A stretch of 64,000 nucleotides of DNA from Antechinus flavipes (lineage: Eukaryota): positions 255,502,001 through 255,566,000 of the forward strand of contig NC_067403.1 in assembly GCF_016432865.1 (NCBI RefSeq), read 5' to 3'. The notes under the pieces are model-generated. The model searched no databases. It had not been told where the DNA came from and saw only the letters and a program-made list of their open reading frames with translations. This document shows positions 53,759 to 61,901 of this stretch, in pieces. Both the position numbers and the translations under genes were made by a program. The stretch's first letter is position 1. Each line of letters starts with the position of its first letter.

Positions 53759-56700
53759 TCACTCCACCAGGAGATCAAACTTCTCGGCAGCCTCAAACTG
53801 GGCGTTCATGGCGGCGGCCCACTCATCCAGCTCTGACTTCTGCAGGGACGAGAGGGGGTGGGTGAGCGGGGGAGAGACAGCCAAGGACCCCCCTCCCCAA
53901 GCCGAGCAGCTCAGACACTTCAGAGGGTGAATGACAGGAAAGGAGCGTCAGTGATTCTCGGAGGACCCTGGTCTGGAAGAACAAGACCCTCGGGCCCCTC
54001 CTTGCCCAGAAGTCATGGGGTGGGCCGGACATTAGGAAGGGATAAGAGCTCTAGTAGCAGGTGAGCAACAGCCCAGCACGAGAAAACCACGAGGCGGGGG
54101 TTGGGAGACAGAGAAGAGCATCCAAATGGGGGGAAAGGAAGGAGGGCTGGGCTCCCCTGGTCTGACCAGCAGAAGGGGGAAGGAACGGCCCCCAAAGCTT
54201 CCTCGGGACTGGAGATGAGCCAGGAGCCCTTCACAAGGACCCTGGGCCCTCGCAGACAAGGCTAAGGCCGGAAGCCCCGGGAGCTGGGCCATCCCTCTGG
54301 GGAGAAGACTGCAACCCCCCAAGACAGTGGCCAAAGTAAAGGAGAATCCGTGAGGGGGGTGGGGGGCAGCCAGGAGCTGAGGCTGCACCAAGACAGACGG
54401 GACAGGGACCCAGAGCAGAGCCTGAGGCCTGATGACAAGAGGGGCGGAAGGCTGGACTCTACACAGAATGACCTTCAAAATGGGGAAGCCAGACCCAGGC
54501 CGGTTTACGGAGGGCAAGACAGGGGCGGAAGTGGGGAGAGGCCCACAACCGGCACTGGCAGAGGCGGGGCCAGGCCTGGTCCCATCCAGAAGGGCTTCAC
54601 TTTGCTTCCTGGCGCATGATTAAAGGGAAGGTTTGTGGGCGTGACTACAAGGAGCCAGTGCGGCTTCCTTGAGCAGGGCCCCCCCCCCAGCCTTGCCTCT
54701 GAGCTGTGGGACCAGGTAAATGCCCGCGTACAGAATGCCGAGGACGGGGCTTCCGGGCGGACTGGGCGACAGCAGCGCCCTCGAGTCATCTCGAGATGGG
54801 GAGGGTCCAGGAGCTGGCACCTCCCCCCCCACCCCCCCATGTTTTTATCAGCAATCTGGATGAAGGCAGAGGCCAGGAGTAGCAGATGGGGGCCGGGCGG
54901 CCCGAGCCACAGCTAACACGAAGGACGTCCGAAGTTGGATCCAAAAAGCCTCAAAGCGGCTGCGCGAGATGCGTCTTGTCCAAAAAAATGCAAAACCCCT
55001 ACTGGGGGTCACTGAGCCGAGCCCCAGAAAAGCAGAGATGGGGACTGGGGGAGCTCAGCGTCAGTTAAAGGGGAGACGCGGCAGGCAGGCTGCTAAGGAG
55101 AGTTTAAGTGGCAGGCGGACGTTCAGCAGGAGGGAAGAGAGATCCCTCTCAGGGATGGGGGTCCCTGCCAAGTGGATTCTGTCTCCAGGAGGGTGGGACA
55201 GTGACAGGACGGGAGCCCCCAACTGCCATCAGCGCTGATCCAAGGGACAGCAAAGCTCTGACTAGAGCAGAGGAGGCGGCCGACCTGAGCCCCCTCCCGG
55301 CACCGTCACACAGACCAAGACTGGCCCAGGCTCCACAGGGAAAGTGCTCACCAGGATCTCGGGCACCTTCCTCTTCCGGCGCTTCTCCTTGGTCATGGGG
55401 ATGCCGGGGAGGATGGAGTCCGGCCCCCAGGCCTCCGTGCTGGGGGCGACTGCTGGTTGTTTCGGCTCCTTCACCACTGGGGAGACGTTCTCCAGCTCCT
55501 CTCCTGAGAGCAGCCTTTCAAAGCCAAAGAAGGAACGGCGCCGGTAGTTGGGTGTCGAGGTAGAGCCCAAGCCCAGCTCATCGAGGCGGCTGTAAGAACG
55601 CCGAACTTTCCTGGACATCTCCAGGTCTCTGGCATCCATGAGTGGTGGCCCAGCGACGGCATTAGGGGTCAGAGGGCTTAACACTGTGGGGGTCACTTCT
55701 GGAGCTGGGCCTGCGGTCAGAGAAGACCCGCCTTTGTGGAGGGGGACGTTTTCCTGCAGAGGGGGCGAGTTCTCCTTCTCCGAAAGCGTAACCTGTAGGA
55801 GGGAGGCAGAGGAAAGGGAAAAGCATGGGGGAGGGCTCTACAGACATGGGCCCTTCCGCCCCCTTCCTTGACTCCAGGGGCAAAGTGAGGACCTGGTTCT
55901 CCAGCCTATTCCCTCCCCCCCCACCCCGGTTTCCAGGACCACCACCAAAAGGCCAAAGAAAGTTTCCCGGCTCGCTGCCGCGATGTGCTGCAGGCACCAA
56001 CCCTTCCCCCCAGCCCCACTCCCGATGCCCCCGCTCTCCAAGGCCGCAGAGCACAGACGGAAATTCCCCGAAGGGAGAGTCTCCGCATAGACGGGAGAAA
56101 ACCAAAAGGCAGAAGTGAGCCGAGCTGAGGCTGGAGCCTGGTGCCGGGGTTAGATCACAGAGGACAGTCAGAGTAAGAAAACTGGGAAGATGAGAAGGGC
56201 TTGGGACACCAAAGAGAGTGAGAGAATGCGGCCGGAGCTCCGCGAGCAGGGCCTGGGTGCTCCTGCGATCCCCCTGCCGAGTGCCTGGGGGGCCTCAGCC
56301 TCCAACTGCATGAGGGGAGGGAGGATGGGGGCAGAGATGTCAGCCTGGCTGAGCTCCAAGTCCTTGGTGTTTCCCTGACTCTACTGGTCTACTCAATAAC
56401 GTACAAACACTTAATCACCGCACTCGAGCCTTTTGCTGCCCCCCCCCCCCTTTCCCACTGCTTCCCTCGGGGGGATTCATATTCTAGCCCAGCTGGATGG
56501 GTGCCTCCCTACCTCCTGTTCTCAGGGCCCAACTTCAAGCATGAACCACCTGCCCATCACTGGGAGGTCCCTCGTTGCCTTTTCCAGACAGCCCCCAACT
56601 GAAAACGATGGCTCCTGCCTTCAGACTTCTCCCGGCAATCTGCTCCCCCTCCCCCCGACTGTGGACCCCTCCTTCGCCATCTGGCCGGAAGCTCGCGGGG

Positions 56701-58873
56701 ATCAGGGTCTAGCTCAACAAGCCTGCTTCAGCTGACGCTTGTCTCTCGGGGCCCCGTCCCCAACTCCCCTTTCTGTTCCACATACGACACCCGTTTGACA
56801 GAAAGCACCTGCCGTGTCCCGGCTCCTGCCCTGTCTGGCTGGGGGCACAAAGCGGTGACAAAAACAAAGGTTCACATGATGTGCTAGTGACGTCACGCGG
56901 AGGCTGTTCTACCCAGACCGGGGGCATTTGTGAATGGAGGCTCCCCAAAGAATGCTGGGGAGACGGGTGCGAGTGAGGAAAGGTCAGGGGGCAGAAGTCA
57001 CGTAACGGGAGGCACTCGCCCCGGAGCCCAGCCTCACCTCCGCAGACGGGGACACCTTCCTCTTGGTCGCAGACCGGCCGCCCTGGGAAGCAGGACTCTG
57101 TGACTGAGAAACGACAAAGGCGGAGGGGGGCTGGGGGCTGGCCGCGGCTGTGAGGAGGGGAGGGGAGAGATGGGGACTGCGGCGCAATCTCCCCCATGGA
57201 GACGACCCTCGGGCCAGACAACGGAAGCCCAGGAGAGGAGCAGCGTGTCCCCGCCTACGCCTCTGGGAGTCCTCCAGCACCTGCAACTTAACTTAGGAAA
57301 GTCTCCTCAGTCTAAACGACAGCCGGACTCGCAACAGACATTAACCAGACCTGCGTGGCTTTGTCCTCCTCACGGCAGTAAGAGAAAGGCGCCCTCGGCG
57401 GCCCCATCCTCCAGGCGGAGGGACCGGAAGCAAACAAAGAACAAGCGGCTTTCCCAGGGCTGCACAAGGCACGTACGGGGCTCTACTTAAACCCAGGGCT
57501 TTGTGGGGCTGCAACTATTGCCAGGAGGGGAAAAGCGGAGAACAGTGGGGGGAGGGGCTCACCTCCGGGGTCCTGGCCACCAGCTTCTTCACTGAGATGG
57601 CCCTTCTGGCTACAGGCGGGGCGCCCTGAGGGAGAAGATTAACAGAGATTGGTTCTGAGGCTGAGGGAACGAGACAGGGCCACAGGGAAGGAGGCTCACC
57701 TTGGGGGTCCGGGGCACACTCCTCTCTGCGGGAATCTGGGGGCCACTTCTCTTAGCCCGGGAGCCGGGTGCACCCTTCTCGATGGAAGTCCCAGGAGTGC
57801 TCCTTTCTGCCGGGGTCTGGGGTGCACTCCTCTCCGCAGAGGTCTGGGGTGCGCTTCTCTCTGCAGGGGTCCGGGGAGCACTCCTCTTGGCTGGGACCCG
57901 GGACTCACTCCTTTTCGCGGGGATCTGGGGTGGACTCTTCTCTGCAGAGGCCTGGGGTCCAATTCTCTCTGCAGAGGTCTGGGGTGCACTTTTCTCTGCA
58001 GAGGCCTGGGGTGCACTTCTCTCTGCAGGGGTCTGGGGTGCACTTTTCTCCGCAGGGGTCTGGGGTGCACTTCTCTCTGCAGGGGTCCGGGGAGCACTCC
58101 TCTTGGCTGGGACCTGAGACTCACTCCTTTTCGCGGGGATCTGGGGTGCACTTCTCTCCGCAGGGGTCTGGGGTGCACTTCTCCCTACAGGAGTCTGGGG
58201 TGCGCTCCTCTTCGCTGGGATGGACTTCTGGACTCCAGGGGAGGGGGCCTAGTCCGGACAAGGATGAGGAACGGTGTCAGCAGCAGAATGGCAAAGGGGT
58301 TTATGGAGGGAGGCAGTTGAGGGCACAGACCGTGGCTCACCTCAGGGGTCCCGGGCTCCCTCCCCTTCGCGGGGGTCTCTGGTCCACTCTTCACCGCGGG
58401 TGGGCGGGGCCCTATCTTCCTCAGAGAGAAGGCTTTCCAGGGCACAGGCGTTGCAGGCTGGAACAAGAAAGCAGGCAAGGTCAAAGGTCATCCTTAGGGC
58501 AAGGTGGAGATGGGGAAGGGGGGGGGGGGGCCGGGCTCTGCCCAGGACTGGATCCATAGGCTGGAAAAGGGCTCACCTGGGGAGGGGCGTCAGGCTCCGG
58601 TCCCGATTTCCGCTGGGACCTACGCAGGGCAGGAGCCTGCAGGGGCGGGGACGCGGGGTCTGAAGAGGGAATGGGGGGAGGTGATTAATGGGAGGCCAGG
58701 ATGCAGCCGGAACACTCCGCCCCCGCTGCCCCGCCCCCAGCCCCTCGGACCGCGCTCGTTCGCCCCCCACCCCCGTCCCGGGCCCTCCGCTCACCAGAGC
58801 GCCTCGTCCCACCCCCTCCTCGCTCCCCCGCGGCCCCGGAGCGGCTGCGGCTCCGGTTCCGTGTCGCCGACAT
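53759..58873 (-). CDS. CDCA5: Sororin (cell division cycle associated 5), N-terminally expanded to >=470 aa
   Basis: Exons 58795-58873, 58577-58659 (LRRSQRKSG), 58341-58457, 57700-58248 (repeat exon), 57563-57625 (RRAISVKKLVARTPE), possibly 57038-57103 or 57038-57280, 55352-55792 (KEN box EKENSP, DARDLEMSRKVRRSYSRL, FGF motif) and 53759-53839 (KSELDEWAAAMNAQFEAAEKFDLLVE*, sororin domain). Confidence 0.93.
57700..58248 (-). repeat. 27-bp coding minisatellite (18 full 9-aa units) forming a CDCA5 exon
   Basis: Unit agtgcaccccagacccctgcagagaga encodes SAPQTPAER. Flanked by a TAG| acceptor and an AAG|GTGAGC donor; 549 nt, phase 0 to 0, no stop codon. Confidence 0.85.

Positions 58874-61901
<3,028 letters not shown>

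Follow-up and report, generated by a model that had tools for sequence, protein, structure and literature searches.

How can a protein that is essential for sister-chromatid cohesion come to be nearly doubled in size, from what source did the additional sequence arise, and does it serve any function? These questions are raised by a stretch of 64,000 nucleotides from Antechinus flavipes (NCBI RefSeq assembly GCF_016432865.1, contig NC_067403.1, positions 255,502,001 to 255,566,000 of the forward strand; hereafter the window), the minus strand of which carries a gene that is, by its sequence, CDCA5, encoding sororin. The fourth exon of this gene, at 57700-58248, is built almost entirely of a 27-nucleotide (nt) repeat. 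We hold with good confidence that exon 4 is a genuine transcribed coding exon, orthologous to a short exon (exon B) of other marsupials and amplified in frame, and that its array is most likely a tolerated, basic and disordered spacer on the N-terminal side of the KEN box. Little conservation and no structure are ascribed to the N-terminal half of sororin, and this locus shows to what extent that half can drift.

On the minus strand, the interval 57700-58248 spans 549 nt, that is 183 codons, free of stops on translation and in phase 0 at both ends, with the acceptor ...ggactag/GCCCCC and the donor CCCAAG/gtgagcc as its borders (intron in lower case). An earlier note, made from the letters alone, had described a 549-nt phase-0 stretch here, and our translation reproduces its quoted peptide exactly. 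Tandem Repeats Finder (TRF) detects repeats at two periods, one of 27 bp (score 390; 15.3 copies with 77% matches and 0% indels) and one of 108 bp (score 534). Cut in the register of the earlier note, the exon yields, as claimed there, 18 nine-residue units with the consensus SAPQTPAER and the tail SVPRTPK, preceded by a 14-residue head. In the register KRSAPQTPA it divides exactly into a head of 12 codons, APSPGVQKSIPA (58213-58248), which is not repeated and was delimited by protein comparison and by MAFFT alignment with the Dromiciops and Trichosurus loci, and an array of 19 nine-codon units (57700-58212), which was delimited by TRF, unit cutting, self-identity and unit comparison. Short head-to-tail units, within the range of 10 to 100 bp and a multiple of three in length, that lie inside a spliced exon make this array a coding minisatellite.

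The array also has a higher-order organization into 4- and 8-unit repeats. Compared with itself, the exon is most similar at a shift of 216 nt (identity 0.79), where the earlier note had seen a duplication, followed by one of 108 nt (0.74). Units 3-5 in that note's register (58072-58152, minus strand) match units 11-13 (57856-57936, minus strand) at 26/27, 25/27 and 27/27 bases. In composition, the 183 residues are dominated by proline (34), alanine (32), serine (27) and arginine (20), with a net charge of +18. They contain 9 TP and 2 SP sites, 11 in all and the same counts as given before, together with six [KR]-R-S sites. Units 4 and 12 (58113-58121 and 57897-57905, minus strand), of the type SES(Q/R)VPAKR, hold a perfect GTGAGT after GGA that could be a cryptic donor; no joint from either GTGAGT is among those listed in the RNA-like contigs described below.

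Splicing of this exon was read from four public runs of one study, the contigs of which were compared with the window over 55300-58950. Two runs (X1 and X2) are genome-size DNA contig sets, and the other two (X3 and X4), of about 100 million letters each, are transcriptome-like. In X3, where the joints have CT..AC ends that correspond to GT..AG on the gene strand, exons 3 and 4 are joined at 58247/8>58340/1 (111 letters on the shorter side) and exons 4 and 5 at 57624/5>57699/700 (62 letters on the shorter side), both at the predicted borders, so that the junctions 58341>58248 and 57700>57625 by which the earlier note proposed to check the exon occur in RNA-like contigs exactly where predicted. 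Upstream, X3 contigs join exons 1 and 2 (58659>58795) and exons 2 and 3 (58457>58577). Downstream, the joint between exons 6 and 7 (55790/2>57036/8) is present in both X3 and X4, and loose contig ends in both runs link exon 6 to exon 5 and exon 7 to exon 8. A further loose end in X4, at 57627, carries a 17-nt string whose sole match, 57702-57718, is the 3' end of exon 4, which again joins exon 5 to exon 4. The interval 57700-58248 is thus a genuine spliced coding exon and is transcribed; translation, splice sites, contig joints and an orthologous exon in a relative (see below) all delimit it in the same way. A processed pseudogene or retrocopy as the source of the spliced contigs was rejected, because none of the CDCA5 joints sought in the two DNA runs is present in either of them.

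Is the exon included in most sororin messages, or is it a minor alternative cassette that most of them skip, as for the paralogous 63-nt exons elsewhere, so that the long protein would be rare? Several observations speak for the latter: opossum and tammar sororin isoforms differ by the inclusion of single paralogous exons, an older protein model of the relative (P0001) joins exon 3 directly to exon 7, and in X3 the contig with exons 5 and 4 has a depth of 27 versus 41.6 for exon 7. Against this, no joint that skips exon 4 is among those listed in X3 and X4, while inclusion joints were assembled. In X4 the depths are closer (43 for the exon 4 contig and 56 for exon 7), and the later model of the relative (P0163) contains exon 4. 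Furthermore, P0001 itself looks incomplete, because it also lacks exons 5 and 6, although the joints 4-5, 5-6 and 6-7 occur in the contigs here. We therefore consider a mostly skipped cassette improbable.

The length of the array is less directly legible. In the DNA contigs of X1 and X2, contiguous cover extends no further than 184 nt and 99 nt into the array from its two edges, the interior being represented by unitigs of 42-97 nt with several apparent variants, and the array length cannot be read from the short contigs of the four runs. Collapsed or expanded units in the assembly could in principle produce such a picture, in which case the exact figures of 19 units and 183 residues would not be real. 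However, all unitigs map to the array with few differences, the array is in frame, its unique edge units are confirmed by DNA and RNA contigs, and an array of similar size occurs in the relative. An assembly artefact of this kind appears very improbable. The same comparison revealed what are ordinary intronic polymorphisms among the study samples, namely a 23-bp insertion at 57539 in intron 5 and a GG insertion at 58517 in the poly-C tract of intron 2, both in the DNA run X2.

Where did the array come from? In marsupial sororins, a 63-nt exon is present in two to four tandem copies, which lie between exon 2 and the exon before the KEN box and encode some 21 residues each, of the type ..P.A.RK.ITLKKI.P.TPE. 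Some of these copies are annotated as alternative in the NCBI models of Monodelphis, Notamacropus, Phascolarctos, Dromiciops, Trichosurus and Gracilinanus; in the eutherian sororins examined, a KPIVLKKIV-type module is present in single copy. Annotated proteins were mapped onto the CDCA5 loci of Trichosurus, Dromiciops, Monodelphis, Petaurus and Gracilinanus. Exon B, the second tandem exon, measures 48 nt in Dromiciops, 60 nt in Trichosurus and 63 nt in both Monodelphis and Gracilinanus, and a 27-bp array is found in none of the five loci. When the window without its interior units was aligned by MAFFT to the Dromiciops and Trichosurus loci, intron 3, the head of exon 4, the last unit, the donor gtgagcctcct, intron 4 and exon 5 aligned to exon B, its flanks and the next exon (exon C), the last unit and donor falling on the 3' end of exon B in Dromiciops. 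The head APSPGVQKSIPA is orthologous to the start of exon B (koala ATSPGAQKSITV, Dromiciops VSSPAVQK), and the repeat unit is the counterpart of the final nine of the 21 ancestral codons (KKIGPQTPE in koala).

Judged from these alignments, exon 4 is an expansion within an existing short exon, the orthologue of exon B, which is itself a paralogous and already degenerate copy. The earlier note had called the array an exonised minisatellite. This origin is rejected, because the pre-existing exon B of other marsupials and its flanks can be aligned with the head and last unit of exon 4 and with the introns on either side; what the note described is an enlarged exon B. Exon 4 is the orthologue of the second tandem exon in both position and sequence, and shares with it the splice phase, the donor gtgagcc and the flanking introns. 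It differs in that its counterparts are 48-63 nt long and have no internal 27-nt array, whereas exon 4 is 549 nt long and has lost the hydrophobic ITVKKI core.

Units of the same family are found in exon 3, which has 39 codons rather than the usual 21 because two extra nine-codon units (VKSGPETPA and KGREPGTPE, 58341-58394) lie at its end. These units are identical to the exon 4 consensus at 20/27 and 18/27 bases, and the same extension is present in both models of the relative, P0001 and P0163. A donor-like GCG/gtgaag stands at the end of the ancestral exon 3, near 58395. Separately, the Trichosurus locus (L001) contains, at approximately 2790-2850, an unannotated sequence similar to exon C (exon 5 here) and followed by gtgagcc. 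A gap of one base, as compared with the window and Dromiciops, suggests that this could be a paralogous exon in decay.

The relative is represented by a single strong match to exon 4 in an exhaustive protein search, a protein of 582 residues (P0163, UniParc UPI00062BF059; E 1.3e-70) that is probably of dasyurid origin (for example, from the Tasmanian devil). Three of the 92 weaker matches were examined, P0172, P0175 and P0178, and set aside as other proline/threonine- or proline/serine-rich repeat proteins and not sororins. P0163 has the same exon chain as CDCA5 here, with the same 12-residue head, the same nine-residue unit, four unit types in common and the same two extra units in exon 3; its head and last four units are one-to-one orthologous to those of exon 4 here. 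In contrast, it has 24 units rather than 19, 15 TP sites rather than 9, a charge of +26 rather than +18, and a 3-unit higher-order pattern (QTPAER-QIPAKR-RTPAER) in place of one of 4 or 8 units, and units of the type SES(Q/R)VPAKR are missing from it. The annotated N-terminus is different too, running in from the 5' leader, and seems to be read from the equivalent of the leader between CDCA5 and the neighbouring ZFPL1 gene. The older model from the same species, P0001, in which exon 3 runs straight into exon 7, is most simply read as incomplete. Among the sequences compared, the array is therefore limited to the lineage of Antechinus and at least one relative, with 19 copies here, 24 in P0163 and one in other marsupials. 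The lineage-specific expansion suggested by the earlier note agrees with its absence from the five other marsupial loci and with its presence, at another unit number, in P0163.

Taken together, these comparisons suggest the following history. The second tandem exon had lost its hydrophobic I-T-V-K-K-I core before amplification. In the lineage of this animal and its close relative, the last 27 nt of that exon were then amplified in frame, probably via replication slippage and unequal exchange, and the same amplification added two units to the first tandem exon, exon 3. The predicted product is a sororin of 492 residues, of which exon 4 contributes 183, about 162 above the ancestral 21-codon exon. 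The size of the protein has thus been nearly doubled by amplifying nine codons of a redundant paralogous exon, with every known functional motif left intact.

Has selection shaped the array? The earlier note took the absence of stops in units of constant length as a sign of selection on the frame. This is weak evidence, because four other reading frames are also open across the array (138-263 codons) and the gain or loss of whole units, 27 being a multiple of three, keeps the frame automatically. We propose instead that the essential role of sororin, together with a unit length divisible by three, has kept the frame. With every distinct variant entered a single time, 14 of 36 differences are synonymous as compared with 28% expected, which is not significant (p = 0.10). 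Selection on the phosphosites is likewise unsupported. The phospho-acceptors are not conserved above their surroundings: of the nine unit positions, that of threonine varies most here, with threonine the top residue in 58% of units, and in P0163 (67%) it ties with position 9 as second lowest after position 1 (58%). TP is kept in register in 8 of 19 units here and in 14 of 24 in P0163. None of the 11 S/T-P sites in exon 4 fits the optimal CDK consensus S/T-P-x-K/R (PMC4230602), with K/R at +3.

The strongest rival to a tolerated spacer is an adaptive multisite phospho-switch, in which the PxTP sites are phosphorylated by Cdk1, with docking of Cks1, or by another proline-directed kinase, so that the +18 basic tail is neutralised and the release of sororin from chromatin or Pds5 in prophase is sharpened or shifted. 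The number of sites (9 TP and 2 SP in exon 4, 15 TP in P0163) would suit such a switch, as would their setting: the acceptors are threonines with proline at -2, clustered in a basic and presumably disordered segment that precedes the YSR and FGF motifs. Docking of Cks1 requires phosphothreonine, and multisite phosphorylation proceeds from N to C along disordered chains (PMC4230602). Phosphorylation by Cdk1 and Aurora B also weakens the binding of sororin to Pds5 (PMC11148194, PMC12976308). The statement in the earlier note that phosphorylation of this region by CDK1 and Aurora B releases sororin from cohesin stands in this respect, but "this region" is too broad. The decisive Aurora B site, S145, adjoins the YSR motif and is the key switch for Pds5B, and human fragments 1-149 and 1-222 are inactive in arm-resolution assays (PMC12976308). 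Moreover, overexpression assays in human cells show no need for the N-terminal half (PMC12976308). The lack of any optimal +3 site, the variability of the unit threonine, a synonymous excess short of significance and the absence of the array from other marsupials and eutherians likewise count against the switch, which we regard as possible but unlikely. An elaborated version is somewhat more doubtful. In dasyurid-like marsupials, the PxTP array might be a rapidly evolving, Cks1-primed and charge-neutralising timer, with a tail of +18 to +26 that holds sororin on chromatin in interphase, mitotic Cdk1 phosphorylation that spreads from N to C toward the YSR and FGF motifs, and a unit number that tunes the kinase threshold for the release of arm cohesin.

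A tolerated spacer, evolving nearly neutrally, remains the reading we prefer. The array segment is rich in proline, alanine and serine, strongly basic and, from this composition, presumably disordered, and it is followed by the KEN box, YSR motif, FGF motif, basic patch and Sororin box, all intact. Beyond their C-terminal motifs, sororins show poor conservation and are for the most part unstructured (PMC10656103). The minimal proline-directed sites would most likely be incidental; they may well be phosphorylated in mitosis, adding negative charge, and are not individually conserved. Several points nevertheless weigh on the other side. The contigs give presence and not proportion, so that partial skipping of exon 4 is still compatible with them, X3 and X4 come from a single study, and in opossum and tammar the paralogous exons next to it are alternatively included. 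The count of 19 units is that of the assembly, since no DNA contig from the short reads crosses the array. Differences from the unit consensus fall 23/23/44 on the three codon positions, an enrichment at the third that hints at some constraint at the protein level. Finally, PxTP sites are numerous in both species (9 and 15) and the positive charge is large in both (+18 and +26), a pattern that selection on bulk properties could produce.

Coding repeats that multiply proline-directed phosphosites in disordered regions, with established phosphorylation and function, include the KSP repeats of neurofilament-H, the 54-bp variable-number tandem repeat of PER3 and the heptads of the C-terminal domain of RNA polymerase II. 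The sororin array resembles these in its short in-frame units with an S/T-P per unit, its presumably disordered context and a copy number that varies, here between species. It differs in that the site is kept in only about half of its units and in that its phosphorylation and any polymorphism within the species are putative. Marsupial sororins form a natural length series, from a single unit in most species to 19 in Antechinus and 24 in the relative, with which one could examine if the timing of cohesin release depends on how many minimal CDK sites are present or on the bulk charge that precedes the KEN box. A literature search returned no paper that combines sororin with marsupial, or CDCA5 with Tasmanian devil; among the matches listed for sororin and tandem repeat, none concerned a repeat within the protein, as judged by titles and abstracts. 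A prediction that contains the exon, P0163, is already in protein databases, where it has passed unremarked. The locus is also a warning for annotation: the older model of the relative skips exon 4, and open reading frame (ORF) tracks miss it because it contains no start codon.

The assignment of the gene to sororin, as proposed in the earlier note, is supported by two Pfam domains and by marsupial orthologues. Sororin_middle (PF09666) matches exon 7 with E 2e-8, above the curated cut-off, and Sororin_C (PF25220) matches exon 8 with E 1.8e-10 (40.9 bits versus a cut-off of 27.4). The closest database relatives over exon 7 are marsupial sororins, at 71-91% identity, and the Sororin box, of 26 residues, is identical to that of other marsupial sororins. 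The KEN box (in SEKEN), the YSR motif MSRKVRRSYSRL, the FGF motif SFFGFERL and the basic patch KEKRRKRK are all legible in exon 7, and these motifs, with the Sororin box of exon 8, fit the consensus published for sororin (PMC10656103). The same motifs, together with the Sororin box, are present in the eutherian sororins of human and ferret (252-253 residues), which are about half the size and have no repeat array.

The model of CDCA5 comprises eight exons on the minus strand. The coding part of exon 1 (58795..58873, ATG at 58873) and exon 2 (58577..58659) were placed by splice reading, the former with an N-terminus that matches marsupial sororins and the latter with X3 joints to exons 1 and 3. 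Exon 3 (58341..58457), the ancestral 21-codon paralogous exon plus its two added units, was placed by unit comparison and by its X3 joint to exon 2, and is followed by exon 4. Exon 5 (57563..57625), with 21 codons encoding GAPPVARRAISVKKLVARTPE, is a paralogous 63-nt exon and by alignment the orthologue of exon C; it is tied to exon 4 by the X3 joint and the X4 loose end, and to exon 6 by loose ends in both runs. Exon 6 (57038..57103) has 22 codons, placed by translation and by its joint to exon 7. Exon 7 (55352..55792) has 147 codons and carries the KEN box, YSR, FGF and basic-patch motifs. Exon 8 (53759..53839), the last coding exon, holds the Sororin box in 26 codons plus a stop, and loose ends at 55352 in X3 and X4 match 53811-53839. 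The predicted 492 residues agree with the size of at least 470 residues (252 in human) expected in the earlier note.

On the plus strand, the N-terminus of ZFPL1 begins at 59428, head-to-head with CDCA5, and the same layout is found in Trichosurus (L001) and Dromiciops (L002). It presumably holds for eutherian CDCA5 as well. The two start codons lie 555 bp apart on opposite strands, and the GC-rich stretch between them (58873-59428) is most likely a bidirectional promoter. A spurious ORF of 316 codons (58573-59523, minus strand) crosses this intergenic stretch. Outside the marsupials, the sororins of the platypus (P0033) and the echidna (P0055) have their own tandem units, of the SPPGKENAP type, with four KEN motifs in the echidna and two plus KEN-like variants in the platypus. 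From these sequences, the N-terminal half of sororin seems to have expanded independently in monotremes, via a KEN-box module.

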